From NCBI RefSeq assembly GCF_006345805.1, contig NC_043004.1, positions 25,482,001-25,546,000 of the forward strand: a DNA stretch of 64,000 nt. The letters run 5' to 3'. The notes under the pieces were generated by a model. It searched no databases, was not told where the DNA came from, and saw nothing but the letters and a program-made list of their open reading frames with translations. A program made the translations under genes and the position numbers. Every line of letters starts with the position of its first letter. Within the stretch, counting starts at the first letter, position 1. This document shows, piece by piece, positions 2,925 through 26,432 of the stretch. The stretch is from Octopus sinensis. Its lineage: Eukaryota.

Positions 2925-4934
2925 ATGGAAGGCATTAATGAGTTGGACACTTCTAACACAACTGTTTTTAACAATGTAGACGCAATTACACAGACAGTCA
3001 GTGGTGAGAAACTTTTACCTAGTGAAACATTTACTAAACAAACATCAGTAAACAGAAACGTTGCTAAATATCGCTGTGAGGTTTGTAAGAAAACATTCCC
3101 TTCAGAACATGAAATGTTCGCTCACAAAAAAATACATAATAAGGAAAAACCATTCCACTGTGAAATATGCGGGAAATATTTTGTATCTAACAGAAATTTA
3201 ACCAAACACACCAGAATACACACTGGAGAAAAACTGTTTCACTGTGAAATCTGTGGGAAACCTTTCGTTAATAATTCGAATCTTGTTATCCACATACGTA
3301 GTCACACTGGAGAAAAACCGTATAGTTGCGATATATGCGGGAAATCTTTTGTCAATAATAGTAATTTAAAAGGACACAAAAAAATACACACTGGCGAAAA
3401 ACTTTTTCAGTGCGATTTGTGTGCGAAATCTTTCATTGATAATTGGAAACTTATTATCCACAAACGTAGTCACACAGGAGAAAAACCGTTTCACTGTGAA
3501 ATCTGTGGGAAATCTTTCTCTCAGAATTCTCACCTTGTTATCCACATACGTAGCCACACTGGAGAAAAACCCTTCCATTGTGATATTTGTGGTAAATCAA
3601 CGGTCTCTAACAGTAGTTTGGCAAGTCACAAAAGGATACACGCTGGAATAAAGCCATATCGTTGTGAAATATGCGGGAAATCTTTCACCGATAATTTAAA
3701 TCTTGTTATACACAAACGTAGACATACAGGAGAAAAACCGTTTCACTGTGAAATATGTAAGAAATCATTCTCTCAAAATTCTCATCTTGTCATTCATATT
3801 CGTTGTCATACAGGAGAAAAACCTTATCAGTGTGATGTGTGTGGGAAATCTTTGGTGTCTAACAGTAGTTTAATAAATCACAAAAGGACACACAGTGGAG
3901 AGAAACCATTTCGTTGTGAAATGTGTGGCAAGTGTTTCAGTGATAATTTGAATCTTGTTATACACAAACGTAGACATACTGGGGAAAAACCATTTAGTTG
4001 TGAAATGTGCGGGAAATCTTTCATTGAAAGTTCCAAGCTTACAATCCATAAACGAAGACACACAGGAGAAAAACCATATAGTTGTGAAATATGTGGAAAA
4101 TCTTTCGTGAATAAAAGTGATTTAAAAAGTCATGAACGAATCCACAGTGGAGAAAAGCCCTATCACTGTGAAATATGCGAAAAATCATTTTCTGTTAATT
4201 CTAGTCTAGCAGTTCACAGAAGAATCCACAGTGGGGAAAAACCTTATCAGTGTGAAATATGTAGTAAATGCTTTGTCTATAAAAGTAACTTGACAAGACA
4301 CAAACGAATCCACAGTGGAGAAAATCCATTCCATTGTGATATTTGTGGGAAATCTTTTATTGAAAAATTTAAGCTTACAGTCCACAAACGTAGGCACACT
4401 GGAAAACAACCATACTGCTGTGAAATATGTGATGAATCATTTGTGAATAATAGTGATTTAAAAAGCCACGCACGAATCCACACTGGCGAACAACTCTTCC
4501 GCTGTGAAATATGTGGGGAATCATTTCATTTGAATTCTTTACTTGTATTCCACAAACAAAAGAACTGTAAAGAGAAACCTTACCTCAGTGAAAATTACAG
4601 GCAATCTTTTCTTAAAAATGAGGATTTAAAATATCATGAGCAAATACACCCAGAAGAAAAGTGTTATCTTTGTGAAATGTGTGGCAAATCCTTCTCTCGG
4701 AATTCTGATCTATTAAGCCACAAACGTAGGCACACAGGAGAAAAACCTTGTCATTGTGAAATGTGTGAGAAATCTTTTGTTAATAATAGTGATTTAAACA
4801 GGCACAAACGAATCCACAGCGGAGAGAAACCATACAACTGCAAAATCTGTGGTAAATCCTTTATCACTTACACTCTCTTAAAAAGGCACCAACAAATACA
4901 CACAAGAGGGAAATCTTTTAAGTATGAAACATGA
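2925..4934 (+). CDS. Polydactyl C2H2 zinc-finger protein, 669 aa, 48-aa leader plus 22 finger units (units 18-19 degenerate)
   Basis: Uninterrupted ORF with repeated CxxC-x12-HxxxH motifs and TGEKP-type linkers at a 28-aa period. Confidence 0.95.
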   Translation: MEGINELDTSNTTVFNNVDAITQTVSGEKLLPSETFTKQTSVNRNVAKYRCEVCKKTFPSEHEMFAHKKIHNKEKPFHCEICGKYFVSNRNLTKHTRIHTGEKLFHCEICGKPFVNNSNLVIHIRSHTGEKPYSCDICGKSFVNNSNLKGHKKIHTGEKLFQCDLCAKSFIDNWKLIIHKRSHTGEKPFHCEICGKSFSQNSHLVIHIRSHTGEKPFHCDICGKSTVSNSSLASHKRIHAGIKPYRCEICGKSFTDNLNLVIHKRRHTGEKPFHCEICKKSFSQNSHLVIHIRCHTGEKPYQCDVCGKSLVSNSSLINHKRTHSGEKPFRCEMCGKCFSDNLNLVIHKRRHTGEKPFSCEMCGKSFIESSKLTIHKRRHTGEKPYSCEICGKSFVNKSDLKSHERIHSGEKPYHCEICEKSFSVNSSLAVHRRIHSGEKPYQCEICSKCFVYKSNLTRHKRIHSGENPFHCDICGKSFIEKFKLTVHKRRHTGKQPYCCEICDESFVNNSDLKSHARIHTGEQLFRCEICGESFHLNSLLVFHKQKNCKEKPYLSENYRQSFLKNEDLKYHEQIHPEEKCYLCEMCGKSFSRNSDLLSHKRRHTGEKPCHCEMCEKSFVNNSDLNRHKRIHSGEKPYNCKICGKSFITYTLLKRHQQIHTRGKSFKYET

Positions 4935-5560
4935 GAAATCGTTCCTTTGTAAATCTAAATTTATAGTCCATCAATATACCCACATTGGCAAACATTGGTC
5001 ACAGTGAATTATGTCAGAAATCATTGTCTTCAAATTATAATGTTTTTGTGTACACATGTATGCTCTGAAAAACACCCTTTGACTTAAATATTTATGAATT
5101 GTGATCTTCAAAAAGTTGCTAAATGAATAAACACTCGGCATAGAACTATATTAGTTTAGAATATGTGAGGAGTCCTTTAGGAATAAGTAAGTCTACATTT
5201 TTAATCCAGAGTTGAATACAGACTGGAGACAAAAATTATCATTGTGAAATATTTTTAGTCTTGTAATCGACTAATATATCCACAAATACACCCTGAAAGA
5301 AGATCTATTCACTGTTATTTATCATTAAAGTTTCATATTAATCATGACTGGGAAAATAAAGGAGGAAAACTTTACAGATGTAAAATTTGTGGAAAATGAT
5401 TCTCATTCAAAGAACATGTTGTTAAACATAAATACATATAGAGATGGAAAATATTGAGAAGAATTTGTTGGCAACATTCTCTTGAATAGTAAAACCAACT
5501 AATTACTGAGAGATTTGTGTAAAATCTTGTCACTGAAATTTGTGACAAAAGATTTGTTTT
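4935..5560 (+). pseudogene. Decayed zinc-finger relics in the 3' UTR of the + strand ZNF gene
   Basis: A shifted frame from 4933 reads EKSFLCKSKFIVHQYTHIGK. 5361-5430 reads GGKLYRCKICGK*FSFKEHVVKH. Confidence 0.65.
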
Positions 5561-5670
5561 CTTATGGAAATTAAAATCTCATAACTATTTATGAGATTTA
5601 TCCATTTGTTGAATGGAGTATTCTGGAAAAGGGGAATATTTTTTTAACATTAATTACCAGTGAAAACACT

Positions 5671-5676
5671 AATAAA
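5671..5676 (+). promoter_or_regulatory. Candidate polyadenylation signal AATAAA of the + ZNF gene
   Basis: AATAAA in the context CCAGTGAAAACACT(A)AATAAAAT, which is conserved at the equivalent position of the paralog (23471-23476). Other AATAAA hexamers exist upstream. Confidence 0.4.
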
Positions 5677-5678
5677 AT

Positions 5679-5958
5679 CATTATCATCATTCAACGTCCA
5701 TTTTCCATATTGGCATAGATTGGATGATTTAACTGTAGCTGGTAAAGCCCGGAGCTGCTCCAGGCTCCATTGCCTGTTCTGGCATGGATGCTTTTCCTGA
5801 TGCCAACCACTCCATAGAGTTTACCTTGTGCTTTTAATGTGGCACCATCACTGGTATCAATTCTACTGTGAAAGACAGGTCTTAGGTACAGCATTGTGTC
5901 AATTATCTCAGTTGTTAGTCATCTCCTTTGTAAAGCTTAGTACTTGAGATCGGCCTTC
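5679..5958 (-). mobile_element. 5'-truncated RTE-family 3' end (antisense insertion)
   Basis: Degenerate (CAT)n tail plus TTCAACGTCCATTTTCCAT, similar to the tail of the RTE at 10714-13511. AAAAT flanks both sides, and the paralogous flank lacks the insertion. Confidence 0.75.
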
Positions 5959-5961
5959 AAA

Positions 5962-6480
5962 ATATTGCTTCATAATATTGTCTCCATTCATAACTACAAA
6001 CTTAAGGGAAGTGGCTCTTATATCTTGAAACACTGGATGTCAGAACATTTTAGTAGCTTGGTTTTAGTGATAATGGCCATATTGATTCAGGAGAATTCTG
6101 CAGATAGATGGATGTTTTGATATTTTCAGTATTTGCTGATTTATAATAACCTTCATTTGTGGATGCTGGTTGCATAGCAACACAATATTTGTTTATTTGC
6201 TACAGCTATTAAGTTCAACTCTACCAGCACCAATGCCAATTATTGTAAGTAAATATTGCTAAGACTGCAATATGACAGGTAAATACTAGGTTTGAGAGAG
6301 ACTGTCAACTTTAAACCTTTGTAGATGAGAGGTTTCGTTTCTGTTGTAGTTTTGTGAGAAGCTACAAGTAGCTGCTGTACCCATTATAATATCACAGAGT
6401 ATTTAAAATAAGGTTAATCTCAGTTGTAGTTTGGTAAGGAGCTGCTGTAACTGTTTTATTATCATACACAGTATCTCAAG
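5962..6480. repeat. Left copy of the inverted paralogous 3' flank (partner 22885-23470)
   Basis: 5962-6302 versus the reverse complement of 23128-23470 shows about 12 substitutions in about 340 bp. Weaker similarity continues to about 6480/22885. Confidence 0.9.
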
Positions 6481-7229
6481 TACAACCAATTTAGTCACTA
6501 CACTGTATGATATGAGACTTGTTCTGCGTCAATGAAACTGATTGTAAGCAACACCAAGTACTTCTGATACTTCATTATGATGTACCATGAAATGGTTATA
6601 AAAAACACCCATGTATTTATGTTTTCCAATATTTTTCTCCTTATGAACACATTTACTGGAATGATGATGTGGTGGTCTATTGCTGGGATATAAGCAACAG
6701 CCACAAAAAAAATTATTTAAAACCTTAGCCTCACCCTGCATCAAGTGAGTCTATGTGTATGTGTGTAAGAAAAAACTTACAGAAAAGTATACTATTAAAA
6801 TAAATTATCTTTTACATATGTTTGTATTTTTTTAACTCACTCTGTCACCTTACTGAAATTCTTTACACACATGCATACATACATTGACAAACACACACAG
6901 TGTGAGTGATATAATTTTGAAGAGTGGGAGAGTGAAAGAAATAGACAAATGTGAGAGAGAGAGAATGAGATCTTTACTGTCTTTGTCACAGATTTCAAAA
7001 TTTTAAAATTAAGTGTAAGTTTTGAAATTTGGTATATTAATATACTTTTTCAGGATGGATGCGTGTTTTTAATTCATTTATTCCAGAAAAAATTTTTTTT
7101 TTTAATGTTACAGAGGTTAAAGTTTGATCATTTTTACCCAATCAGAAAATAGGATTTTTGTATGTGATAGCTGTGATAAAATGGAAGTAAACATTAGAAG
7201 ATGTTTTAAAGAAAATGAAAGTTATGCTT

Positions 7230-7935
7230 GAGAGTTAATACATACACAAAGAGAGTGAGTGTCAAAGAGTGTACTAAATATAAAGAGATGGCTTGATGGT
7301 GATAGAGAGTGGGGATCTTTTCGGTTTGAGCAGCAGTTTTTTCTAGCGGTGTCATATGAAATTGTCACCCATAATTATGCCCCTAGTATCGATCTATTGC
7401 ATTTCTATCTCTTTTAGGGTTAAGGGTGGGGGAAGGGTATCTTTTTTTCTTCACAAATGTAAATAAACCCAATCTGTTTCTTAAACGAGGGACATATTCA
7501 TACAGCACAATGTTTTTTACCCCAATGGATGTCATTGCAGAAATTGAAGAAAAAAACATCAAATATCTTACAAACTATAGAATTTTCTCAATAAAGCCAA
7601 GAGAAAAAGATGTTTTATAAACACATTCTACCAGTATACGAAGTTTAAAATTTTTTAGTTACCTAGAAATTATGTTAAAAACTGCCGTTCAAACCGAAAA
7701 GATCCGAGAGTGGGAGAGTTGTGGTTCCAAAGTTGAGTTATTTCTCATAGAAAATTGTTTTTTTTTTATTATTATTTACGAACAACATTGTGGGAGAGTT
7801 AATACATACACAGAGTGTCAAAGAGTATAGTAAATATAGAGAGATAGTTTGATGGTGATAGAGAGTGGGAGAGTTGGGGTTCTAGAGTTATTTCTCATAG
7901 AAAATTTTTTTGTTATTTATGAACAACATTGTCTG
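7230..7935. repeat. Diverged tandem duplication (about 160-bp unit), first copy interrupted by a MITE
   Basis: GAGAGTTAATACATACACA...GGTGATAGAGAGTGG[MITE]GAGAGTT...GAACAACATTGT is repeated without the MITE at about 7795-7935. Confidence 0.75.
7313..7705. mobile_element. GGATC-terminated MITE with 8-bp TSD (Merlin-like)
   Basis: TIRs GGATCTTTTCGGTTTGA / TCAAACCGAAAAGATCC. Perfect TSD GAGAGTGG at 7305-7312 and 7706-7713. Confidence 0.9.
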
Positions 7936-8060
7936 TGGGATGCAGAATTCAAAAATCAAATTTGTTTTTCTCAAGGATTCACTGTTTCAGAGCCTTTTTA
8001 CGTTAAACACTCATACATAACCACATACATTCACATTTATATATATATGTGAGTATATAT

Positions 8061-8715
8061 CATCATCATCATCATTTAATGTCCATTGTCCATGCTAGCA
8101 TGGGTTGGACTGTTTGAGCAGGGTTGGTAAGCTGAGGGGCTGCACTAAACTCCAGTCTGATTTGGCATGGTTTCTACAGCTTGATACCCTTTCTAATGTC
8201 AACCACTCTGAGAATGTAATGGGTGCTTTTGCATGACACCAGTATCTTCCATGACTATGATTTCACTTGTTGAAGGGTCTTCTTCTCAAGCAAAGCATAT
8301 TGCCAAAAGTCTCAGTCATTTGCAATTGTCTCCATGAGGCCCAATGCTCGAAAGGTGCTTTTTATGTGCTACCAGCAGGGGTGCTAGCTATGTGACACTG
8401 GCATCGGCCACATTGCCTCTGTGAGACCCAACACTCAAAAGGTGCTTTTTACATGCCTCCGGCACAGGTATCAGTTACATGACACCAACAACAGCCACAA
8501 CTATGATTTCATTTGGTTTGATGGGTCTTCTCAAGCATGACATATTGCCAAATATCACAGTCACTAGTCATTGCATCCATGAGGCCCAATGTTCGAAGAT
8601 CATGCTTCACCACTTCATCTCATGTCTTCCTGGGTCTCCCTCTTCCACAGCTTCTCTCCACTGTTAGAGATCGGCACTTCTTCACACAGCTGTCCATATC
8701 TATGTTTATATATTG
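8061..8715 (-). mobile_element. 5'-truncated RTE LINE 3' end
   Basis: (CAT)5 tail at 8061. The ORF C-terminus and 3' UTR match the 12800-13510 copy. 15-bp TSD TATGTGAGTATATAT at 8046-8060 and 8716-8730. Confidence 0.85.
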
Positions 8716-8769
8716 TATGTGAGTATATATATTTATATGTGTGTGTGTGTCTTTATATATAAGGTACTT

Positions 8770-9320
8770 TCAATTTCAACTGGATCAATCTCTTTGCACA
8801 CAGACAGCCACTGTGATAAGCTATGCAGATGATACAAAAGTCTCACAGGTAATACAGCCCTGGAGATGTCTCACACTTACAACGAGATTTGGATGCAATA
8901 TACAAATGGGCTGAAAGTAATAACATGAAACCTAATGCTGAAAAGTTCCAAGCATTGCGTTATCAACAGACAAAGCTAAATGCAACACAGACAAAATACA
9001 CTGGACCAAAATCATATTCAGTGTGTGATCTGAACATTGACATGAGTAGTGATGTATCTTTTCATGCACATATTACTAGGTTGGCAATGAAATGTGGACA
9101 GCTGGCTGGCTGGATTTCTAGAACTTTCAGAACAGAAGTGCAGGAAACCATGATGGTTATCTGGAAGATGTTTGTCCTAAACTGTTTGGATTATTACTCC
9201 TAACTATGGTCACCACAGAATGTAATATTAATGGCAAAACTCAATGCTAGACAAAGAAGATTGTCTCAATGCAACAGATTAGCTACTAGGAAAGACTCAA
9301 AGGGTTAAGACTATTTTCTT
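8770..9320 (+). mobile_element. CR1/L2-type LINE reverse-transcriptase C-terminal fragment
   Basis: YADDTKV at about 8823 followed by DAIYKWAESNNMKPNAEKFQALRY and AMKCGQLAGWISRTF. Confidence 0.7.
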
Positions 9321-9870
9321 ATCTTGGAAGTGATATCACATCCGAAAAAAAGATATACCAAATCCACATAGCAAAAGCATGGATGAAAAGGGAATTATTC
9401 AGAATAATCATAGAATCAGTTCATCAGTATGGACTCCTACAAAAAAGCAAGTTTGATAGGAGCTACACATGTATAATGTGTGCTTTTGTCAACAAATTAC
9501 GGAAACAACATCCAACAAAAGAAGAGCTTTATGAAAATATCACCAACATCAGTCATTTGAGACTGGAGGACAAGAAGTGCTGGTCACTGCTACTGAAGCA
9601 AAGATGAATTTGTGGATCTCAAGTCATGGACATTCTTATGTTGGAAGACCCAGAATGATGTAAATTAATCAACTCTCATGAGAGATGCTGAGTTACAAAT
9701 AGAACACTAAAAAATATGGAAGCAGGAATGCTTGCAGGAAAAGAGTGGCTTTTGTCTGGGCGACCCAAAATGATAATGTATTATCATGTTTGTTCTAGAC
9801 ATCATATATACACTACCCTCTATACATTGCTGATATGTCACCAAGTTGTTTATTCCATTTATATATATGT

Positions 9871-10172
9871 GGAGGCGCAATGGCCCAGTGGTTAGGGCAG
9901 CGGACTCACGGTCGTAGGATCGTGGTTTCGATTCCCAGACCGGGTGTTGTGAGTGTTTATTGAGCAAAAGCACCTAAAGCTCCATGAGGCTCCGGTAGGG
10001 GGTGGTGGCGATCCCTGCTGTACTCTTTTGCCACAACTTTCTCTCATTCTTTCTTCTGTTGGCCTGCTCGCTTAGCCAGCGGGGTGGCGTCATTTGAAGG
10101 CTAAAACAATGCAAAGCGCATTGTGACCAGCGTTGTGTAGCAACATCAGATAGCCTGGTCAGTCACGGTGAT
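9871..10172 (+). mobile_element. tRNA-derived SINE (full length)
   Basis: Pol III A box TGGCCCAGTGG and B box GGTTTCGATTCCC in a tRNA-like head. The 3' part recurs at 36600-36715. Confidence 0.8.
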
Positions 10173-10479
10173 ATGTATATATGATAATGATGCTTTATGA
10201 AGACTACCCATTAATAAAAATAGTTACACTGACACTTGCAAATTCACCTGAACTATTACACTGTGAGGGGATTATGCTAAACAACAAAATTATTTCCTCT
10301 AATGATTTTGTATGGCATAGCATCTAAAAAGAATATATGAAAGATCTAGTTTATAAGAATTTGTACCAAATTTTTGCAGAGATTTGAAATTTTTTAACAT
10401 TTTTTTGCAATTGTCTGATAATACAGACATAGACTTGCCAAAATGCATCAGTAAATTAAAATTGATATTTTTTTCACCA

Positions 10480-13400
10480 TTGTTACAGTCATCTGAAATG
10501 GAACTGTCTTTGCTATTCGTCTTTAAAAAAGGACATAAAGCAACTGAAACTGCTCACAATATCAATGAAACGTTTGGTAAGGAAATGGCCAGTGAGTGGT
10601 CTGCTTGAAAATGGTTTAAACAATTTTGTAGTGCAGACCTGAGCCTTGAAGATTGTAAGCATAGTGGATGCTTATCTGTCATCGATGATGGTCAATTAAA
10701 GACCATTGAGAAGTGCCCCTAAGCTGGGGCTACCTGATGGAATGAAAGACTTTTGACAGAATAGAAAGGGGTATAGCATCACATGATGTGGAAGACAACT
10801 GGAGGATTCTACAGGACAACCTGCTGAGAGCTACTGACCAGATCTGTGGAAGACAACTGGAGGCTTCTATGGGAAAACCTGCTGAGGGCCACTGATCAGA
10901 TCTGTGGATGGTGCCAAGTCCCCTCTTGACCCAAGGTAACGTGGTGGTGGAACAATGTTGTTGACAGGGCTATTAGAGGAAAGAAACAGGCTTGGAAGGA
11001 CGGTGGTAGCAGGGAATTGTATCAGACTGCCAGAAGGGAAGCTAGGAGACAGGTTTATTTAGCCAGAGGGGAAGCAGATAAGAAAAAATTTGCCAATGTT
11101 CTGCACCATGGGAACCAAAGACTTGAGGTATTTCGTGTTGCAAGACAGTATGTGAGAGAGAATTGTGATGTCGTGGGAGAGGAATATGTCTGCATGGATT
11201 ATGGTTCACTTGCACTAAATGAGGCTGCAAAGAGACAGGTTTGGAGATGCCACTATGAAAGGTTGCTCAACAAAGAGAATGACTGGGAGAAAGAGAGTCT
11301 GCCAAATGTTGACCCAACAGAGGGACCAATTATCTGAATTGACAGTACCTTGGTAGATAAAGCAATTAAGGGTATGAAGACAGGGAAAGCCCCCAGCCCA
11401 TCAGGAATCACCGCAGAGATGCTCAAAATATCTGGTGGTGTCAGCTATAGCCTAGTTACCCGTATAGTTAACCAGGTGATACTTGAAGGAGTCATACCCA
11501 ATGATTGGTGTAGCAGCATAATAGTCAACTGTTACAAAGATAAAGATGACACTTTAGAGACAAATAATTACAAAGGTATCAAGTTGTTGGATCAGGTAAG
11601 GAAGGTCACGGAGAGGGTCATAGCCCAGCTAATTAGGGAGAGAGTCAATTTAGATGAGATGCAGTTTGGATTTGTGCCAGGGAAAAGCATCACTCATGCT
11701 ATGTTTCTGGTAAGACAGCTGCAGGAGAAATACCTAGCCAAAGATAAACCTCTGTACCTGGCTTTCATTGACATGGAGAAAGCCTTTGACAGGGTCCCCC
11801 AATCCCTTATCTGGTGGTCAATGAAGAAACTAGGGATTGATGAATGGTTAGCGAGAGCTGTGCAAACCATGTACAGGGATGCTGTCAGTATGGTGAGGGT
11901 TGGCAGCAAGTACACTAAAGAATTCAGGTTAGAGGTAGGGGTACACCAATGTTTAGTCCTCACCCCACTCCTATTTATCATAGTCCTCCAGGTAATAACA
12001 GAGGAATTCAAGACAGGATGCCCCTCAGAGCTCCTCTATGCTGATGACCTTGCTCTAATTGCTGAGTCACTATCAGAACTAGATAAGTTTTACATGTGGA
12101 AGCAAGGATTAGAATCAAAGGGCCTTAGAGTCAACCTAACTAAAATCAAATTTCTAATAAGTAGGCAGACAAACCACAAATCCCTTCAGGTAGATGGCCC
12201 TGCTTGATCTGTAGAAAAGGTGTAGATAGGAACTCCATAAGTTGTACCCAGTCTAAGCTATGGACACATAAGAAGTGCAGCAATATCAAAGGAAGGCTAA
12301 CTGGGAAGATAGTTTTGGTATGTGGCAGATGCTCAGGAGCAATAAACACTGAAAATGTACAGAGAACAACTTCTGCCACATTCCAGGGAGAAAAACCAGA
12401 AGTAGTTGATAGCTTCCATTACCTAGGTGACCAAGTCAGTAGCGGGAGTGGGTGCTCTGAAAGTGTAGCTGCTAGAATAAGAATAACTTGGGCAAAGTTC
12501 AGAGAGCTCTTACCTCTACTGGTGACAAAGGGCCTCTCACTCAGAGTAAAAGGTAGAATTTATGACACATGTGTACAAAAAGCCATGCTACATGGCAGTG
12601 AAACATGGGCCATGACTGCTGAGGACATGTGTAAGCTTGCAAGGAATGAGGCCAGTATGCTCTGCTGGATGTGTAATGTCAGTGTGCATACTCATCAGAG
12701 TGTTAGTACCTTGAGAGAAAAGTTGGACCTAAGAAGCATCAGATGTGGTGTGCAAGAGAGACGACTGCACTGGTATGGTAATGTGGTGAGAATGGATGAG
12801 GATAGCTGTGTGAAAAAGTGTCACATCCTAGCAGTTGAGGAAGCACAACCTTAGAACATTAGGCCTCACCGAGGCAATGACTAGTGACTGAGACCTTTGG
12901 AAATATGCAGTGCTTGAGAAGGCCCAGCAAGCCAAGTGAGACCATAACCTGTGGCATATGCCAGTGGTGTAACCAGCCCACTTATGCGTACCTTTCCATC
13001 ATTGGACACTAAACTCTGCTTGCAAAGACCTGTTGAGGCAAGTGAAATTGAAATCAAATTCGATGACAGCTTGACTGGCATCCATGCTAGTGGAATGCTA
13101 AGAGTACCATCCAAGCATGATCATTGCCAGGGCTACTGACTGGCTCCTGTGCCGGTAGCACATAAAAAGCACCATTTGAGCATGAGCATTACCAGTGTCA
13201 CCTTACTGGCACGTGAAAGACAACATGTGAGCGAGGTTGTTGCCAGTGCCACTGGACTGGCTCTTGTGCAGGTGGCACATAAAAAACACCTTTTGAGCAT
13301 GGCTGTTGCCAGTACCGCCTGACTGGCCCTCGTGCTGGTGGCATGTAAAAGCACCCACTACACTCTTGGAGTGGTTGGTGTTAGGAAGGGCATCCAGCTG

Positions 13401-15550: not shown

Positions 15551-15899
15551 AGAAAAACAGTAGTAGAACAAGAGCCATGAAAGCCATACTGAACATCAAC
15601 AAGGAGCCCCAAGCTTTCAAGAAACTCAACCAACCTGTTGGTTGTTCTCAGTTATATGGAGGTTTCTTCAAGTACTTTTTTCTATGTGCATGCATATGCA
15701 GTTGGAATCAACTCAATATGATATGATGATCTGAAGATATGCCCTTGAAAGAGTTGAATGCTTCAAAGTGTAAAGACCATCCTCGGTCATGAATGACCAT
15801 GGGCTTGCACCTAGAAAGTTCCTCTCCAAGGCACAAGTCTAGGCATTGATAATGATGTAGATGATTTGAGCCTTAGGAAAGAAATATTTATATTCGCTG

Positions 15900-16450: not shown

Positions 16451-19400
16451 GATGAATGCAGTTTAAACATTGCGGTAGATTTAGTCATATTATTGAGAGC
16501 TGGGAATGTACATCTGCATTTGTCATCACTGCAGATGTGAGCAGTAGTTCTCTTACTGAACCAGTTGACTATATCTGGTTCCTTTACTCAACATTGAGTG
16601 ATAAAAAAATCCCTTGCTTGGGTAATGGTGAAACAATGGCATGCAGCATGGTGGATGTGGTAACACAAGTCAAATAACAACACATAAGCTGTATACATAA
16701 GGCAGTGTATACAAGTTATATAGAACAAACAACATGAAAACACATCAGCTGGATATATAAGGTAGTATTTAATGACACAATGTGCTGACCAATCCAGAAT
16801 TGAGCCCACAACTTTAAGGTGATGCATATATGATATCTAGAACAAACAACTTCTGTAATGCAGTACAGAAACTGCATTGCAATTTTCATAAAACTTTTAT
16901 AAGACATTGCAACTTGTATAAAACTACAAAAAATGAATTGTTGCCTTCTAGTCTGCTATTTTAAAGATTGCTGTTATTGTACAAAAGGTAATTTTCAAAA
17001 CATTCTTCATCCACTGACAAACATTGAAGACATTGCACATTTTAACATATACAGCTGTAAACAAAGAATGTGGAATTATTTAACCATATGAATATTTTAG
17101 AATTGCAGTGGGATTTCAGGAATTGCTTTTCAACTATAACTGCAGGTTAGACATTTCATTAAAGTGCCTTGTTTGGAAGAGGAGTTGGTGGAGACAATGT
17201 TAAACTAACTTTGATATTCTACTTTATGAAGTATGGAAAATCCCTTTTCTGAGTTGAACTCGTGCTATGTTAACTTTATCTTTCTGTGTGAAATCTATAG
17301 TAAAAATAAAAGTACTGGTGATATACTGCGGTGAGTTCAGTCTAACATACCATGTATAAGAGTGTCAATGTGACTAAACCAACAAATTTCATTATTTAAA
17401 GTCAGTTCTGTCATTTAAAAATTAGGTATATGAGTTATATTTTCAGTAAAAGAGACAGCAAATAGTTTATGAATTGTGTATTAACCACAGTATATTACTG
17501 ATACTTTAACCCCAGTACAATGAAAAGCTCAGTTGGCCCTGGTAGGAAAATATTCAATATAATTCTCACTATTCCATACTAGATATGGTTTTATGATTAT
17601 ACCTGAAAATGGTCTGTCATGCACCAGTGGATGTTAGAAAGCCTCTCGTTCATTCATAGAATATAACATCTCATTATTATGAGGAATACAGCAATAACTA
17701 GGAAGCTGTCAAGATAAAAATGATTCAGATGCTTCCCAAAGAATAGACAACACATCCTAATTTTGTTTGTACCAAATGTCTGCAATTCCACTGGCACCAA
17801 TGTGGGTGATTTAGTTCTCTCTTAATAAGAAATGCCAACAGTTTTCTTTTATCAAGAACATAGATTGTCTTTTTGAAATTCTTAGTCATTATCAGGTACC
17901 CAAAATCCTTGGTACAATATTTTAAAGAGAAAAATCCCATGTTAAATCTGTTTGAATTCAAAAAATATTCCTATCAGGAATGCACATAACCATTGTCCAT
18001 TCTGAAAAGGAGTCAGTTCATCTCAATAACTGAATATCATTAACATGTATCCTGTAGTTCTAGCTTTTGGGATTTTGTAAATAAATTTTCTTTTCTGAGA
18101 TTTTAAAAAAAGATTCTGCACACTTAGGTCAACTAAGGATGTAGTCCTCTACATCACATCGAATGTCCAGATCACTATGGTTCAACTTTTATATGATTAT
18201 ATGCTGCTGTTATGATTACATAACTACATGTCTATGACTATCTTATACTATAATTTAAAAAAAACTGCTTATTAATTAAAAGCAATTCTTGAAGCCTACA
18301 CTGTCTAGAAAATACTTTAAAATTCTAATTTTAACATATTGTTATCAAAATGTGGCTTTCAAGGTTCTTTCATTATTGAAGATTTCAACTACAAACTTAT
18401 CTGAATTTACTATGAGACAGTTAATGTTTCCTCTTTGTCTTTTTTTTTCTCATATACTTCATGTTGCTACTTTCCACAAATGTATCAGTAAAAACATCTG
18501 TGTCAGCCAAATTATGTTGATTCCAATATCCTTTCATATTTGTTGGATGTTTTTGAAGAATGAGAAAGCTGAAGAAGTACTTCAATTATACCAAATATAA
18601 ACTTGTCCCATTTTCTTTCAACTAAACAATTTTATTGTCATGCACAGTGTTTTAAAAAAGAAAACCATTATAGCTTCCACAAAGCCATTTAAATTACACA
18701 CAAAGAAATATTGCTAGTTTAACCAGGAGCAACCTTTAATTAGATAATGTACAAACATCAAAAATTTTCAAACAAAAATGAAGAAACACTCTCCTTTAAA
18801 ACATATTAAAAATTTAATATCTTGTTAAATTAAGCAAATACTTTCCTGAGCTAATGGTTATACCAGTGTGGTGATTATTCTCCAGGGTAGAATTCGGAAT
18901 CCACGTCGGTTGGTCACCAATTTATATGGTGGGAATATACATTCAGTACCAGGTGTTGATATGGTTGCGTGTGTATTATTACAAGAGTTCTTACAGAGAA
19001 GAAGAATAAATTTAAGAACTATATGTTTACTACATAAAAATATATTTTATTTATTGGCTGATGATGAAGCATAATCAAAATGTAGAATCTAGTTGAATGA
19101 AGTAATCTATGCAAGAAAGTTCAGGGATAGGAAATATAGAAATAACAGCTAAGTGGTGGTTTTCAATCATGAGGCGTAGAGAAATAGACGGACAAAGCAA
19201 TAACATGGATGGTTCTAAGTCTAATCAACAAAGAAATGAAGAGCAGGGTTAGCAAGCTGGTTTTAATAACGGAATGCTAGACATTCTAGAAACTTCCAAG
19301 AGAAATGCTAGGCTTGTTGAATAATTAAGAAGCACGTCTCATGACACAGATGTTTCAAAAAACTTAGTAAAGGGAGGTTACTCTGCAATCTTTCTTGCAA

Positions 19401-19671
19401 GAGAGACCATTCAACTATTTAGCTACCGCCACACTAACTTCCTTCAAGTCATCAAAGACAAACTTAGAGTTTAAGTTCAGATCATCATGAGTTGCTACAC
19501 CTGTACATATGTATATATATATATCATTCTGACAAATATTGTAGATTTTCTCCACTTATGGATTTTATATTGTGTATTGTCAAAAATCATGTGCCATATC
19601 GAATGGCACACCAACTACACATTTGGCTCATGTTATATCCTTGGATATTGTGATGTCTTACAGCTTAGAAC

Positions 19672-19962
19672 AATGACATCTGCCAGTTCCTTGATCAGTG
19701 GATGTCTTGCTACATGCTTGACTAATGACATGTCTGTCATTTCTTAACCAGTGGATTCCTTACTATATAATTGGCCAAGGAATGTTACATCCGTATCCAG
19801 TAGCATGCCTGCTACATACTTGACCAATGGCTTGTCCATTACATCCTTGATGAATGACCTGTTTTCCACATCCTTGACCAATAGCAAGTCTGGTGCATCT
19901 TTTATCAACAGGATATCTGTTAAATCCTGGACCAATGACATGTCTGCTTCATCCCTGATCAA
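19672..19962 (-). repeat. Degenerate 27-bp tandem repeat (about 11 units) encoding a nonapeptide repeat
   Basis: Units such as CTTGACCAATGGCTTGTCCATTACATC / CTTGATGAATGACCTGTTTTCCACATC / CTTGACCAATAGCAAGTCTGGTGCATC. Minus ORF 19744-20028 reads LIRDEADMS LVQDLTDIL LIKDAPDLL LVKDVENRS FIKDVMDKP LVKYVAGML. Confidence 0.75.
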
Positions 19963-22884
19963 TATGTATCTTAGATATTTTTGAATCTCATGTTTGCTAC
20001 AAACTTGTGGAAACAAGTACCATTCCAATGAATACCTCTTGAATTTGCTACATTGGCACTAACTTGCTTTAAAAAAAGTATACTTCTTTTTTCAAAACGG
20101 TTTTCCTTATGTTTTGACACAGACTTAAACCTGCTCTGAAAAAAAACCAACAGGTTTTTTCAGAAATATATTTAGAAATTTTAGTATTATCATGTCTATG
20201 TATTCCACACATTATAGCTTATATGGTACAATAATTCATATCTACACTTGTATGTAATAACAGGATAGTCATTTTAATTGTTTCTTTGGTGAATCTAACC
20301 CTTTTAAGATACCTTAAGGTTTGTATTTACTCACAGTTAAGGTTGTTCATCATTTCTTTCCATCTCTGTAGAGATAGCTAAACTTAACTGTTTATATATC
20401 TACTATATAGGTTAAATATATCATGCTTTGATACTGTGTGGACTGAGATTCCCATTGGCAGGCCCCTGATATTAAATAAAGGTGTTAACACTTATAGTAT
20501 GCAAATTAGCACCTCTAGTTTTCTGTGGCCATTGTAATTGTTGAGTATATAAATACTGGCTGCTTGTTCCTCTGGGATTGACCAAACTGATGTAGACACT
20601 TCTGATGAAAACCCAATATTTAAAAATTGATTAAAGTTGTTCATTTTTTAAATCTCTGGAGAAATTAGTTAAAATTAGCCCTGTTTATATATCTACTATA
20701 TAGGTTATATATATATGTTTTGAAAATATTAAAACTTGACACATTTTATTACACAAATATAGTTGTTCTTACACTTGCCAAGCATGAAGAAACGGTAAAA
20801 TACAGCAAATATATTTGAAATGATACATGTAACAGTAAATAGCACAGTGCTGTATTGAGGGATGATGTACCGCCCCCACCAATAAATTCTGCTTGTTTCC
20901 AACATTGGAAAATTTTAGAATAAACATAAAAGCAAGTTTGGTTCAGCAAGTGGTACTGTTTAAGGATGCAGTTTTCTCTTCCTTCATTCTACAAAATGAT
21001 CGTTTCTGTTTTGTTCTCTTATAAAGCACCAAAATTAGTCTGCTGTCCTATTTCTATTTCACTGCTATCTTGGAGCAAACACTCTTCTTACTCTTCACCA
21101 ACAGCCTCTAAATTGGCAAAGAACTAGTGGAGGAAATACACTTTAATATTTACATTATATCCACACTTCTAAAAGTGAAAAGTAATTTTTTTTCAGATAT
21201 TCATAGTTTTTAGACTTCTCATTGTCCAATACAAAAAGTTTCTCTCAACTTCTGGTAATGCTACCCATGTATTTTTCTCAACAGGTTAAACTTATAATTA
21301 ACACATTCTTCTTTAATGTTCTTAGGACCCCTCAAATATACTTGCCTTCAATTTCTTTTGATTTACAGCATAATATTTTCTGCCAAGATATTCTGTACTT
21401 TGAAATCTAGTCTCATATGAAGAGCTGTGAAAATGGTTTTTTTCTGGTTTTGCTAGGTGGTGGAGCTGTTCATGTTGTTTTCCAACACTAATATCTCTTC
21501 TTTCTGACTATTATTTTATCATTCAACTTGACTGTCCCATTAAAAAAACAACAACAAAAACTCTGATTGGGTAAGCTATATGGTAAGCCCCTTTCTAATA
21601 TCTGCAAATCATCCAAATGTGAAGTAGTTGAAGTTTTCAGCTCCACTTTTGTTGTTACATCAATTTCTTTTAGATGTACCTTACAAAATCACTGTTTCAT
21701 TACTCACCAAAACCAACATTCCTTTAGCATTTAAACTGGCCAAACTGAGCACAAATATTCTACATGTTCTATGTTAAAACATGCCAGATTTGACCTCTCA
21801 CACCTACCCTACAAGGTCATTCTTAAAGTAAGCGATCACATTAATCAAAATCTCAAAACTACAAGATAATGCAAGATTACTTCTAAACAATGTGAATAAA
21901 TAAGCACGACATTTGACAGAGTAACCTGTATGCTAAAGGAGTAAACTCTCCTTCGGAGTTTTCAGTGATAAGTCACCATTTGTCTGATTTATATCGACAT
22001 TCCATTACATTTAACAAACCATTAACCTCATGACAGTAATGTCATCTATACTAAACAGATTTGCTCTTCCCAGGGCTGCAGTTTATTTTGATTAAGTCCA
22101 AGACATAATAAATATGCTGAGCATTTTGAAGATCTAAATTTGCCCTCAACCACTTTAATTCAAACTGGTTATGGTGCCCCTGTACTAGTTTCATACTCAA
22201 TAACTGCCTTAGATGTGTAGCACTCAGTGTTACTGATGTAATTAAACCCATAAAATTTCAAGTACTTTATCAGAGTCAGGTTTTATGGCTGACAGTAAGT
22301 CTGAGTAAACTAGCTTTGATTAGGTCCTTCAGCTATGCCTAGAAATATCAACTCTGCAAAAATAGCAACCTTCAAAATGGCTTTGTTGGATCTCTCCTGG
22401 CCATTGATACCTTAAAGTTCATTCTCTTTCTTTTAGTCTATTGTCTTAGATTTATGTGCAAGCCTCGAAGACAGAGTGAGAAGGCCATGATTTTGCCTTG
22501 ATTACATAATTTCACACCAAAATATAATATATGTTCTTCTAACAAAATCTCTAGCAAGTTGCCACTGCCATACTATTGCAGATGATTCACAAATGTAATA
22601 GAAGACATCCAGGCTGTGCATATGCTTCCTGTACCCAATAATATGAGCCATATTACAAGTTTAACTTAGTAATGACAGAATACAAAGATATGCAGTATCA
22701 ACCATATTTTAAATGCAGTTTAGTAGCTGATGGTGCAATCATCTAATGCTAAAATAATGAATAATATGCTTGCAGTCATCAAAAATAATTTTGTACACAA
22801 AGCTACCTGAGAAACAGGCTCTGACACAGTCACATTTCATACTATGAGCTAAGTTGTTTATGGTTATCAAAAATATTTATAAGC

Positions 22885-23470
22885 AAGAGATAATGTGTAT
22901 GATAATAAAATGACTACATCAGCTGGTTATTGGTCCTCACTAAATTACAACAAAGATGGACCCTTCTTCAGATACGGTGTACAATATAATGGCTACAGCA
23001 GCTGCTTGTAGCATCTCATAAACTACAACAGAAATTAACCTTTCTTCTCTCATCTACCATTGTAATTCACTTACTCTTGTAACTATGGATAATCAGGGAT
23101 TGCTATTTTTATATGGTTTAAAGATAAGTCTCTCTCTCAAACCTAGTATTTACCTGTCATATTGCAGTCTTAGCAATATTTACTTACAATAATTGGCATT
23201 GGTGCTGGTAGAGTTGAACTTATTAGCTGCAGCAAATAAACAAAAATTATGTTGCTATGCAACCAGCATCCACAAATGGAGGTTATTATAAATTAGCAAA
23301 TACTGAAAATATCAAAACATCCATCTATCTGCAGAATTCTACTGAATCAATATGACCACTATCACTAAAACCAAGCTACTAAAATGTTCTGACATCAAGT
23401 GTTTCAAGATATAGGAGCCACTTCCCTTAAGTTTGTAGTTATGAATGGAGACAATATTATGAAACAATAT
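22885..23470. repeat. Right copy of the inverted paralogous 3' flank (partner 5962-6480)
   Basis: The reverse complement aligns to 5962-6480. Confidence 0.9.
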
Positions 23471-23476
23471 TTTATT
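23471..23476 (-). promoter_or_regulatory. Candidate polyadenylation signal AATAAA of the - ZNF gene
   Basis: TTTATT on + in a context conserved with 5671-5676. Confidence 0.4.
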
Positions 23477-23749
23477 TTAGTGTTTTCACTGGTGATTAAT
23501 TTTTAAAAATTGATTCCTCACAGGTAAATAACATAAAATAACATCCAACAAACACTTTCTAGTTATAGAACTTTCATTTTTTGTTACTGTATTTCTGCTG
23601 AAATACACTAACTTAGTTTCAATTAACTTTGAAAATAATGAAGAATTTAGCAAAACGACTGACATTATTAAGCTGGTGTTTGGAACATAAATTAACATGA
23701 AATTTTAATAGAAGGTTTTAATATAGATCTCTTTAAATCAGGAAGTTTG

Positions 23750-24172
23750 GGATCTTTTCGGTTTGAACAGCAGTTTTTAACATAATTTCTAGTTAACTAA
23801 AAAATTTTGAACTTCATATACTGGTAGAATGTGTTTATAAGACATCTTTTTCTCTTGGCTTTATTGAGAAAATTCTATAGTTTGTAAGATATTTGTTGTT
23901 TTCTTTTTCTTCAATTTCTGCAATTTCAACCAATCAATTACGTCCATTGAGGTAAAAAACATTCTGTGCCGTATGAATATGTCCCTTGTTTAAGAAACAG
24001 ATTGGGTTTATTTACATTTGTGAAGAAAAAAATATACCCTTCCCCCCACTCCTAACCCTAACTAACCCTAAAACAGATAGAAATGCAATAGATCGATACA
24101 CGGGTCATAATTATGGGTGACAATTTCATATGACACCACTAGAAAAAACTGCCGTTCAAACCGAAAAGATCC
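23750..24172. mobile_element. GGATC-terminated MITE with 8-bp TSD (same family as 7313-7705, opposite orientation)
   Basis: TIRs GGATCTTTTCGGTTTGAAC / GTTCAAACCGAAAAGATCC. Perfect TSD GAAGTTTG at 23742-23749 and 24173-24180. Confidence 0.9.
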
Positions 24173-24338
24173 GAAGTTTGTATTAGAGAACTGGGGAGAG
24201 TGTATGAAAAGGGGTTAGTGTTTTCTTGTGGATAACAAAACTCAAACACCAAAATAAAGAAATTCTGATATTTTTCAAGATAGATGTTGCCTTATACAAC
24301 ATAGTAAAACAAGTTTAGGGTTGCAAGAAAATGATTTC

Positions 24339-26432
24339 TTAAGTTTCACAGTTAATAAGATTCCTTCCAATGTGTTTTTGTTTGTGTCTTTTTAAATAAT
24401 CGTTAGAGATAAATGATTTCTCACATAGTTCACAGCGAAATGGCTTTTCTCCAGTGTGACAACGTATATGGATAACAAGATTCGAATTATTCACAAAGGA
24501 TTTCCCACAGATTTCACACTGGAATGGTTTCTCTCCAGTGTGGATTCTTCTGTGTGCTGCTAAATGACCGTTAGTGATAAAAGATTTTCCACACACATCA
24601 CAGTGGAATGGTTTCTCTCCACTGTGGATCATTCTATGTGTTTTTAAGAGTCCATTAGTAATGAATGATTTCCCGCACATTTCACAGTTGAACGGTTTCT
24701 CTCCGCTGTGTGTTCTTTTGTGACTTGTCAAATAACTATTAGACACAAAAGATTTCGCACACACTTCACACTTGAACGGTTTCTCTCCACTGTGGATCCG
24801 TTTGTGACTTGTTAAGTAACTATTATCAACAAAAGATTTCCCGCATATTTCACACTGATAAGGTTTCTCTCCAGTGTGACTACGTTTGTGGATAACAAGA
24901 TGAGAATTATTAATGAAAGATTTCCCACAGATTTCACAGTGGAATGGTTTTTCTCCACTGTGAATTCTTCTATGTCTGTTTAAATCACTATTATTCACAA
25001 AAGATTTCGCACATATTTCACAGCAGTATGGTTGTTCCCCAGTGTGTATACGTTGGTGAACTGTAAGCTTAGAATTAGAGACAAAGGATTCCTCACAAAT
25101 TTCACAGTGGAAAGGTTTTTCTCCAGTATGTCTACGTATATGGATTGTAAGCTTAGAATTCTCAATGAAAGATTTGCCACAGATTTCACAGTGATAGGGT
25201 TTTTCTCCAGTGTGAATTCTCTTGTGAACAATAAGACCAGAATTAACACAGAAGGATTTCCCACAGATTTCACAATGGAATGGTTTTTCTCCAGAGTGTA
25301 TTCTTTTGTGACTTGTTAAATAATTATTATCAACAAAAGATTTCCCACATATTCCACAGTGAAATGGGTTTTTTCCACTGTGTATTTGTTTATGTGTTTT
25401 TAAGAGACCATTAGTGATAAATGATTTCCGACATATTTCACAATGGAAGGGTTTTTCTCCCGTGTGCCTACGCTTGTGGATGACAAGATTCGAATTTTGA
25501 GTGAAAAATTTCCCACATATTTCACAGTGAAACAATTTTTCTCCAGTGTGTACTCTGATGTGTGCCGTTAACTTACTGTTTGTGATAAAAGACTTTCCAC
25601 AGATTTCACAACGACACGGTTTCTCTCCACTGTGGATTCGTTTGTGCCTGTTTAAATCACTTTTATTCACAAAAGATTTCCCACATATTCCACAGTGAAA
25701 TGGGTTTTTTCCACTGTGTATTTGTTTATGTGTTTTTAAGAGACCATTAGTGATAAATGATTTCCGACATATTTCACAATGGAAGGGTTTTTCTCCCGTG
25801 TGCCTACGCTTGTGGATGACAAGATTCGAATTTTGAGTGAAAAATTTCCCACATATTTCACAGTGAAACAATTTTTCTCCAGTGTGTACTCTGATGTGTG
25901 CCGTTAACTTACTGTTTGTGATAAAAGACTTTCCACAGATTTCACAACGACACGGTTTCTCTCCACTGTGGATTCGTTTGTGCCTGTTTAAATCACTTTT
26001 ATTCACAAAAGATTTCCCACACACTTCACACTTGAACGGTTTCTCTCCACTGTGGATCCGTTTGTGACTTGTTAAATTACTCTTAGATACAAAATATTTC
26101 CCACACACATCACACTGATAAGGTTTTTCTCCAGTATGCATTCTTCTGTGACTTATTAAATTGCTGTTATATGCAAAAGACTTGCCACAAGCTTCACAAT
26201 GATACGGCTTTTCCTTATTGTGTATTTCTTTATGACTGAACACTTCATGTTCCGAAGAGAATGTTTTCTTACAAATCTCACAGCAATATTCAGAAATATT
26301 TCTATTTACTGATGTCTTTTCGTTAAATGTTTCACTTGCTAAAGGTTTCTCACCACTGATTGTCTGTGTAATTGAGTCTACATTGTTAAAAACAGTTATG
26401 TTAGAAGTGTCCAACTCACTAATTTCCTCCAT
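24339..26432 (-). CDS. Polydactyl C2H2 zinc-finger protein, 697 aa, 48-aa leader plus 23 fingers; paralog of 2925-4934
   Basis: Uninterrupted ORF. The leader is 35/48 identical to the + paralog, and the first finger and C-terminal ...ET* ending are shared. Confidence 0.95.
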   Translation of the reverse strand: MEEISELDTSNITVFNNVDSITQTISGEKPLASETFNEKTSVNRNISEYCCEICKKTFSSEHEVFSHKEIHNKEKPYHCEACGKSFAYNSNLISHRRMHTGEKPYQCDVCGKYFVSKSNLTSHKRIHSGEKPFKCEVCGKSFVNKSDLNRHKRIHSGEKPCRCEICGKSFITNSKLTAHIRVHTGEKLFHCEICGKFFTQNSNLVIHKRRHTGEKPFHCEICRKSFITNGLLKTHKQIHSGKNPFHCGICGKSFVNKSDLNRHKRIHSGEKPCRCEICGKSFITNSKLTAHIRVHTGEKLFHCEICGKFFTQNSNLVIHKRRHTGEKPFHCEICRKSFITNGLLKTHKQIHSGKNPFHCGICGKSFVDNNYLTSHKRIHSGEKPFHCEICGKSFCVNSGLIVHKRIHTGEKPYHCEICGKSFIENSKLTIHIRRHTGEKPFHCEICEESFVSNSKLTVHQRIHTGEQPYCCEICAKSFVNNSDLNRHRRIHSGEKPFHCEICGKSFINNSHLVIHKRSHTGEKPYQCEICGKSFVDNSYLTSHKRIHSGEKPFKCEVCAKSFVSNSYLTSHKRTHSGEKPFNCEMCGKSFITNGLLKTHRMIHSGEKPFHCDVCGKSFITNGHLAAHRRIHTGEKPFQCEICGKSFVNNSNLVIHIRCHTGEKPFRCELCEKSFISNDYLKRHKQKHIGRNLINCET

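Follow-up and report, generated by a model that had tools for sequence, protein, structure and literature searches.

Two convergent poly-zinc-finger genes of Octopus sinensis, probable members of an Octopus-restricted subfamily of the cephalopod C2H2 expansion

We analyzed a 64-kb stretch of Octopus sinensis chromosome CM016866.1 (hereafter, the window), which contains two uninterrupted open reading frames (ORFs) for C2H2 zinc-finger proteins, here called genes A and B. The genes are convergent, with 19,404 bp between their 3' ends, and the coordinates and orientation given in a preliminary description of this DNA, namely two 22-23-finger genes facing each other about 19 kb apart, proved exact. 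The pair is isolated rather than part of a large tandem cluster, with no other fingers from -7 kb to +37 kb. The features are as follows.

2800-2924, + strand: conserved upstream module of gene A (..CTGAATCATAA..CATAGTAACAGACATTTCTCAGTTTTTAAGAATTCTTCAAGA-ATG), either a proximal promoter (TATA-like box, TCAGTT initiator) or the region of a 3' splice site
2925-4934, + strand: gene A, uninterrupted ORF of 669 aa; leader and 22 C2H2 units (20 intact)
2925-3158, + strand: family-specific N-terminal module of gene A; polar/acidic leader of 50 aa (2925-3074) and first finger (3075-3158)
3495-3998, + strand: old three-finger tandem duplication in gene A; A6-8 (3495-3746) and A9-11 (3747-3998), 80% nucleotide identity
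4503-4670, + strand: units 18-19 of gene A, in-frame degenerate fingers, one without its second His and the other without both Cys
4935-5440, + strand: decayed finger remnants past the gene A stop, with stops and frameshifts
24339-26432, - strand: gene B, uninterrupted ORF of 697 aa; leader and 23 intact C2H2 units
25359-26030, - strand: very young four-finger tandem duplication in gene B; B4-7 (25695-26030) and B8-11 (25359-25694), 3 differences in 336 nt
26199-26432, - strand: family-specific N-terminal module of gene B; leader (26283-26432) and first finger (26199-26282)
26433-26560, - strand: conserved upstream module of gene B

The 28-aa units follow the pattern C-x2-C-x12-H-x3-H, which is intact in 20/22 units of gene A and in 23/23 of gene B. 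They are joined by the canonical linker TGEKP(Y/F), whose columns hold T in 23 or S in 15, G in 39, E in 35, K in 33 and P in 34 of the 39 internal units. Pfam zf-C2H2 matched with E-values of 1e-111 (A) and 1e-128 (B) over 20-22 stretches per protein, and only C2H2 families were matched. The predicted products are Krueppel-type poly-zinc-finger proteins, and from these family features they would be expected to bind DNA sequence-specifically, runs of adjacent fingers presumably reading a specific sequence.

We compared the order of the fingers in the two arrays. The finger types reported to recur at different ranks are indeed present there: VNNSNLVIHIR in A3 and B22, VNNSDLNRH in A21 and B16, VNKSDL in A13 and in B4 and B8, and IE.SKLTIH in A12 and B14. 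The best matches between A and B are often off-rank, but shuffling was overstated, given that the best match wins over the second-best by only 1-3 nt. Since the fingers fall into few nucleotide classes and the margins are this narrow, independent tandem amplification of blocks explains the off-rank pattern. A collinear chain of A and B fingers scored no better than permuted orders, in a test of low power. That each gene has its own internal multi-finger duplication was borne out by A6-8/A9-11 and B4-7/B8-11. The C-terminal end described as common to both genes is so only in part: the stop lies at the same codon in both, (Y/C)ET*, in the place of the finger's second Cys, but the unit itself is only 43% identical in amino acids (69% in nucleotides). 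Outside the genes, A/B similarity covers about 100 bp on the upstream side and continues for about 45 bp past the stops, and further flank matches are interspersed repeats. The decayed fingers past the gene A stop indicate that the ancestral array was longer.

The N-terminal modules are more alike than the C-terminal units. The leaders share 74% of amino acids and 86% of nucleotides, and the first fingers 79% and 83%, in agreement with the earlier claim of a common leader and first finger. The first finger is atypical (CxxCKKTF.SEHE.F.HK.IH in gene A). Both genes can be aligned over this module in every column with seven Octopus paralogues, 49-61% identical to A; the leader consensus is ME.vN.LDTSN..VFN..D.VTQT..GEK...ETF.KQ.S..RNI.EY (about 50 aa), followed by the first finger C..C.KTFSSEHEVF.HK.IH. 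Members of this leader family are annotated on other chromosomes, in O. sinensis and O. bimaculoides, and the RefSeq paralogue models begin at the same leader Met. Among other family members, L003, L004 and L005 are frameshifted or truncated and L006 is intact, which fits birth-and-death evolution. In the predicted structure the leader is disordered (pLDDT below 50) and the first finger adopts a beta-beta-alpha fold (pLDDT 86). Directly 5' of the leader ATG lies a module of about 120 bp, aligned at six loci with the common core CTGAACCATAA..CA(G/T)(A/G)CAT(T/C)TC(T). The leader and odd first finger are a conserved family signature, and three marks define the subfamily: the roughly 50-aa polar/acidic leader with predicted disorder, the atypical first finger and the upstream module. 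The available parts of PMC10547256, PMC12513265 and PMC12988792 make no mention of this leader, first finger or upstream module.

Next, we estimated divergence and selection. The dS between A and B is 0.24 in the leader, 0.9 in the first finger and about 0.67 in matched fingers, and the overall omega is 0.19. Variation is concentrated at helix positions -1, +3, +5 and +6, and the entropy of contact positions is 2.4 bits vs 0.9 elsewhere. Between A and B, the rate of contact codons is 4-6 times that of scaffold codons (omega 0.7-1.0 vs 0.16); across 18 matched finger pairs the contact omega is 0.26. In the A6-8/A9-11 duplication, with a dS of about 1.07, 11 of 12 contact residues are identical and the contact omega is 0.02, which implies purifying selection on fingers A6-11. 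Positive selection at the contact residues, on which the preliminary description had set store, did not emerge: omega never clearly exceeded 1 in the A/B comparisons or in the old duplicate of A, with few sites in each. That both ORFs are intact carries weight, because in simulations with 0.1 or more substitutions per site, an ORF of 669 codons was closed by substitutions alone more than 99.9% of the time. Judged by this divergence (dS about 0.25-1), A and B are old paralogues whose ORFs have been kept open by selection.

The sequence shows how the two genes are built, which family they belong to, that selection has preserved their ORFs and in what way the arrays evolved. We consider it likely that the two genes are old paralogues in inverted orientation and belong to a subfamily restricted to Octopus, itself part of the known cephalopod C2H2 expansion; each consists of an upstream module and one long coding exon kept open by selection. 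The arrays diverged along familiar lines. Blocks of three to four fingers were tandemly duplicated by unequal crossing-over or slippage, anciently in A and very recently in B; single fingers decayed, as in A18-19 and the tail past the A stop; and substitutions accumulated mostly at helix positions -1, +3, +5 and +6.

What such genes recognize is a separate question. The idea of transposable element (TE) control is not new, since Wells et al. 2023 (PMC10547256) derived predicted motifs from every octopus zinc-finger ORF and found these motifs enriched in TE consensus sequences genome-wide, and PMC12988792 gives the species of that analysis as O. sinensis. It is possible, and we put it forward tentatively, that A and B recognize TE sequences and recruit KRAB-independent silencing, and that an arms race against octopus TEs reshapes their arrays. 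In addition to the published enrichment, the fast contact codons relative to the scaffold and the very recent duplication in B point this way, and the conserved acidic leader could match the role of the 28-aa FiNZ motif in cyprinid fish. The locus is also repeat-rich, with 25-52% of the flanks recurring elsewhere within the 64 kb, and the largest TE ORFs are fragments, of reverse transcriptase (285 and 216 aa, separated by a frameshift) and endonuclease (141 and 170 aa). However, repeats are everywhere in the genome, so that a position among TEs is uninformative about the targets of A and B. Furthermore, omega does not exceed 1, the paralogues are old, the old duplicate in A retains nearly all of its contact residues, and a crude recognition-code motif gave 4 matches in the window against 5.1 expected, in a scan without a TE library and with almost no power. 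The MITE-like repeats in the window are putatively Merlin-like.

A second reading, plausible but held with reserve, is that A and B are ordinary host-gene transcription factors, neural or embryonic, whose overlap with TEs is incidental or co-opted; such roles have been proposed for the expanded C2H2 genes of cephalopods. Nervous tissue is the main site of expression of these expanded genes, and their paralogues fall into different co-expression modules (PMC12513265); both long retention of the two paralogues and long-term purifying selection, which extends to the contact residues of the old duplicated fingers, are in accordance with this. However, in other animals the combination of a long array, finger turnover and no classical effector is more often a mark of zinc-finger proteins that bind repeats, such as KRAB-ZNFs and FiNZ-ZNFs (PMC10547256). 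Holzinger et al. 2025 (PMC12513265) treat a ZNF-TE arms race in cephalopods as an open question.

We also analyzed the proteins for effector domains. For KRAB (PF01352), the whole proteins gave no Pfam match at E-values up to 0.01 and the leader none at E-values up to 1, and SCAN (PF02023), BTB and ZAD (PF07776) were absent from the Pfam results for A and B. The description of the genes as effector-less thus holds for these four domains, but is unproven beyond them, because both O. sinensis and O. bimaculoides have paralogues that conserve the leader, which together with the odd first finger could be a short effector motif. This N-terminal module would be the sole candidate for contact with partner proteins. 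We think it rather unlikely that it forms, together with the upstream module, a cephalopod-specific effector cassette that recruits a silencing complex, analogous to KRAB or FiNZ, in an independently evolved Octopus system of TE repression.

The description of the genes as intronless applies to the coding ORFs; for the genes as a whole it is unproven, because the upstream module is conserved in the paralogues of both species and untranslated or upstream exons are possible. Single-exon transcription from the conserved module is what we infer. A competing explanation takes the conserved AG-rich stretch before the ATG for a 3' splice site through which an upstream exon adds an N-terminal domain; the genes would then not be effector-less. 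Such a coding exon is allowed by the open frame upstream of both ATGs (51 nt in A, 60 nt in B, with a frame-keeping 6-bp indel), A, B and L006 all conserve AG dinucleotides that follow pyrimidines, and the RefSeq paralogue XP_052833736.1 joins an upstream TE-like coding exon to an AG that lies 51 nt 5' of the leader ATG. However, that exon has no Pfam match, and among the sequences at hand its sole other resemblance is weak (46% over 28 aa, E 0.007) and lies in the intergenic stretch of the window, while three other RefSeq-annotated paralogue proteins begin at the leader Met. L003, L004 and L005 do not keep the AG positions, the acceptor used in L006 is missing from B, the 10-15 kb upstream of A and B share only interspersed repeats, and a TATA-plus-initiator promoter would also account for TCAGTT and the AT-rich box some 25 nt before it. 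An upstream exon that adds a domain through this splice site seems improbable. That the ORFs are non-functional relics or mobile-element cargo, open by chance, is scarcely credible: frameshifts in several family members, the two degenerate fingers and decayed tail of A and the lack of the exact ORFs in the protein collection (which seems to hold no Octopus RefSeq entries) would fit this, but either 2-kb ORF would be open at the observed divergence with a probability below 1 in 2000, the overall omega is low, the upstream module is conserved and the units are not bounded by terminal repeats or collinear flanks.

Few invertebrate groups besides cephalopods have zinc-finger expansions on a vertebrate scale, and whether such genes police TEs or wire the nervous system is a published open question to which this pair adds no answer. 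The pair is instead a clean test case, with two long, intact, selection-maintained paralogues that carry different arrays and a very recent four-finger duplication, and with a short conserved leader directly testable for repressor activity. Should the leader turn out to be an effector motif, silencing adaptors of ZNFs would have arisen independently for a third time, KRAB and FiNZ being the other two cases.

Several known systems invite comparison. In vertebrate KRAB-ZNFs, the KRAB domain is encoded on separate upstream exons and acts via TRIM28/SETDB1. The arrays of A and B resemble theirs in evolving by finger duplication, loss and change of specificity residues, in lying in one exon and in the birth-and-death of paralogues. 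Unlike in KRAB-ZNFs, no KRAB domain was found, nor a conserved upstream exon within 10-15 kb. Drosophila ZAD-ZNFs are likewise an invertebrate lineage-specific poly-ZNF family without KRAB, but no ZAD was found in A and B, and predicted ZAD-ZNF motifs are reported not to be TE-enriched (PMC10547256). The cyprinid FiNZ-ZNFs are also a lineage-specific family with a short, acidic, conserved N-terminus unlike any known domain, for which TE targeting is proposed; their motif is 28 aa, the family is under positive selection and knock-down demonstrated TE repression (PMC10547256). By description rather than sequence, the octopus leader differs in its length of about 50 aa, and no positive selection was detected. 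Given that FiNZ-ZNFs are reported to be confined to cyprinid fish (PMC10547256), the likeness of the leader is a functional analogy at most. A further comparison is with the lineage-specific C2H2 expansions of octopus and other cephalopods (Albertin et al. 2015, cited in PMC10547256 and PMC12988792; Holzinger et al. 2025, PMC12513265). A and B differ from these in forming an isolated convergent pair rather than a large tandem cluster, but share with them long tandem arrays, canonical linkers, Octopus-restricted paralogues on several chromosomes, the lack of a vertebrate-type effector domain and a repeat-rich context. A and B are new members, of the usual kind, of an octopus zinc-finger expansion that has been described before.

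The preliminary description had placed two facing ORFs of 22-23 zinc fingers about 19 kb apart, and our analysis agrees. The two genes, A and B, are convergent with a stop-to-stop distance of 19,404 bp, and an exact look-up located both in assembly GCA_006345805.1 (record CM016866.1, about 25.48-25.55 Mb).

2925-4934 (+): ORF A, 669 aa; 22 units of 28 aa, 20 of them intact
24339-26432 (-): ORF B, 697 aa; 23 intact 28-aa units

The two defective units of A are 18, which lacks the second His, and 19, which lacks both Cys. A Pfam search of the two proteins returned only C2H2-type families, in 20-22 stretches per protein, and no KRAB, SCAN, BTB or ZAD domain, which supports the description of the pair as KRAB-free. 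Neither the remainder of the window nor its 7-kb upstream flank contained any other finger. A whole-protein homology search with A was set aside as uninformative about the family, its matches being dominated by generic vertebrate poly-ZNFs. End to end, the proteins share 61% identity with one single-finger gap, and the identity is still 56% when the register is moved by two fingers. The two genes had also been said to share both ends. This holds for the leader, i.e., the roughly 50 aa before the first finger (74% identity in protein and 86% in DNA), for the first finger (79% and 83%) and for the position of the stop codon, and less so for the last unit, which shows only 43% (protein) and 69% (DNA) identity. 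Both stop codons occupy the site where one more finger would have its second Cys, and about 45 bp past them can be aligned. Three to four decayed fingers, containing stops and frameshifts, follow the stop codon of A and extend to about 5440, which indicates that the ancestral array was longer.

Next, we considered age and selection. Between A and B, dS was 0.24 for the leader and 0.90 for the first finger, and the 18 matched finger pairs gave a dS of 0.67 with an omega (dN/dS) of 0.19; judged from these dS estimates, the pair is old. Both ORFs are nevertheless intact, as had been noted, whereas not one of 2000 simulated copies of the A ORF remained open at >=0.1 substitutions per site. Therefore, selection maintains both ORFs. 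Residue entropy peaks at helix positions -1, +3, +6 and +5, with a mean of 2.44 bits at the contact residues (-1/2/3/6) versus 0.91 elsewhere. Omega between A and B was 0.7-1.0 at contact codons versus 0.16 in the scaffold; by this measure their specificities have diverged, with no excess over neutrality. Within A, an ancient duplicate has kept 11 of 12 contact residues although its silent sites are saturated (contact omega 0.02), which indicates long-term conservation of specificity rather than an ongoing race.

The finger types quoted in the preliminary description are present at exactly the ranks it gave, and the best nucleotide partners are frequently off-rank (A3-B17, 88%; A3-B22, 87%; A21-B4, 87%; A10-B3, 82%). 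The top three-finger block, A2-4 versus B16-18, reaches 80.6% (mean 66.4%, sd 4.6%). Third-codon positions agree in 75-86% of cases in the matches versus 52% in the background, so that the matches reflect common descent and not convergence. The 45 units fall into few nucleotide classes, ordered as follows.

A: 1 7 4 7 4 4 5 4 4 5 4 4 7 3 7 2 7 9 10 4 7 8
B: 1 7 7 7 7 4 6 7 7 4 6 7 3 4 2 7 4 7 7 6 7 4 6

The idea of reshuffled fingers was overstated: the classes are few, the best and second-best partners differ by only 1-3 nt of 84, and the rare classes are collinear (A14, A16 and A17 correspond to B13, B15 and B16). A collinear chain scored no better than random permutations of the inner fingers of B (P 0.64-0.88), a result dominated by a few classes, and with so few classes this test cannot separate shuffling from the alternatives. 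Each gene does have its own multi-finger duplication, as described. A6-8 and A9-11 share 80% nucleotide identity (dS about 1.07), and B4-7 and B8-11, a tandem repeat of a four-finger, 336-bp unit at 25359-26030, differ at 3 of 336 nt. The latter duplication is either a very recent, possibly polymorphic event or an assembly issue. The simplest account of the arrays would be that blocks of 3-4 fingers were amplified in tandem, independently in each gene, around a small core that is still collinear, with the decay of single fingers in addition. Block amplification with single-finger decay is the standard mode of evolution for such arrays.

An inverted segmental duplication with common flanks was rejected, because the similarity of A and B stops about 100 bp before the ATG and about 45 bp downstream. 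Beyond these limits the flanks match only through interspersed repeats, which occur in several copies and orientations; 25-52% of this repeat-rich flanking sequence has another copy in the window, and the TE ORFs in the window are fragmentary. Two repeats lie downstream of both genes.

5959-6317 and 23115-23473: repeat pair in inverted orientation, 95% identity
7313-7705 and 23750-24172: repeat pair in inverted orientation, 88% identity

Their order is swapped between the genes, and the 88% element has additional copies in the window. Their similarity far exceeds what the silent-site divergence of the genes allows, which marks them as younger, independent insertions and not as leftovers of the gene duplication.

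About 120 bp preceding the ATG could be aligned with A and B in all four of the other Octopus paralogue loci examined (L003-L006).

2800-2924: conserved upstream module of A
26433-26560: the same, of B
L003, 1440-1569: the same
L004, 500-633: the same
L005, 5870-6000: the same
L006, 8030-8160: the same

The core common to the aligned loci is CTGAACCATAA..CA(G/T)(A/G)CAT(T/C)TC(T). The module is non-coding and constrained: all six of these family members, which represent at least two Octopus species, have it, and it is better conserved than any other flank. It can be read as a proximal promoter, given an AT-rich box about 25 nt ahead of a TCAGTT initiator-like motif. Alternatively, its conserved TTTCTCAG might be a 3' splice-site region, since the RefSeq model XP_052833736.1 splices a TE-like coding exon from further upstream onto an AG that lies 51 nt ahead of the ATG, and the frame upstream of the ATG is open for 51 nt in A and 60 nt in B. 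However, that AG is missing from B and the remaining AGs are not conserved among the paralogues, which weakens the acceptor reading. The upstream exon of the model (L006 6001-6267; acceptor side 8110) encodes 89 TE-like aa and gave one weak match among the sequences compared (window 22278-22361, 46% over 28 aa, E 0.007). Given the conserved leader and upstream module, the terms 'effector-less' and 'intronless', applied to the genes previously, are not established.

We also searched for the leader in other proteins. It gave no Pfam match even at E up to 1, and AlphaFold assigned it a pLDDT <50, compared with 86 for the first finger; it is probably disordered. An exhaustive profile search found it in seven representative proteins. 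Six of them carry a source record or name, in each case O. sinensis or O. bimaculoides, and three have a recorded genome contig, each time another chromosome-scale record; one paralogue, 'zinc finger protein 239-like [Octopus sinensis]', is on another record of assembly GCA_006345805.1. The leader Met is the start in most RefSeq models of these paralogues. Truncations or frameshifts disrupt the paralogues at L003, L004 and L005, and that at L006 has an intact ORF (473 aa, 14 fingers), a pattern that shows birth and death in the family as read from these loci. No other intact member seen is as long as A or B. The RefSeq paralogue models look chimeric with TE-like exons; in XP_029645730.2 the last exon, at a distance of 52 kb, is reverse-transcriptase-like (L005 59388-59615). 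Word-indexed protein searches with the leader gave zero matches or just two Logan fragments, but they miss Octopus RefSeq/UniRef members recovered by the exhaustive search, so their negatives are uninformative for Octopus. The index apparently has no Octopus RefSeq entries; thus nothing can be concluded from missing orthologues, and a reading of A and B as unannotated, which their absence from the protein collection in an exact look-up might suggest, was dropped.

The window also contains the following features.

980-2549 (also 26932-27257 and 31644-32047): MITE- or foldback-like repeat nest, upstream of A
11017-12854 (+) and 39878-40970 (-): LINE fragments with frameshifted reverse-transcriptase ORFs and endonuclease (Exo_endo_phos) pieces
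49858-50265 (-): ORF matching the AdoMet-dependent proline di-methyltransferase family (Methyltransf_PK, E 9e-45) over the family's C-terminal two-thirds
60085-61789 (+): two ORFs, 158 and 244 aa

The nest, a candidate for the Merlin-like MITEs of the preliminary description, has 165-nt arms (1445-1609 and 1859-2023) that are 92% complementary, and part of the LINE reverse-transcriptase region has another copy in the window. The methyltransferase ORF probably represents the terminal exon of a host gene similar to NTMT1. The two ORFs at 60085-61789 gave no Pfam match at E up to 0.01; we take them to resemble hAT-transposase-derived proteins. GC content rises to 48% at 38001-40000, adjoining low-complexity sequence and a LINE fragment, versus about 35% elsewhere. 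Neither Rfam families nor tRNAs were found when the window was scanned for them.

The preliminary observation is thus real and accurately described apart from the overstated shuffling; both genes are old and functional, and as paralogues within a known expansion they are ordinary. Modestly new are only the features by which the subfamily is defined (leader, first finger and upstream module) and the near-perfect young four-finger duplication in B. It had further been proposed that A and B belong to a TE-recognising surveillance system. A recognition-code motif scan showed no enrichment, in a test without power, and the window sequence neither supports nor refutes TE control by the two genes. 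Holzinger et al. (PMC12513265) describe cephalopod C2H2 expansions with octopus-specific clades and neural expression, and call the cephalopod ZNF-TE question open. Wells et al. (PMC10547256) report a computational test of all octopus ZNF ORFs with at least five fingers, in which TE enrichment was found, and PMC12988792 names O. sinensis as the species used and weighs an arms-race against a neural reading. Therefore, the proposal repeats a hypothesis already published for this genome. By analogy with cyprinids, where the 28-aa FiNZ sequence is described as the marker of a family in PMC10547256, the octopus leader could be a short effector motif.
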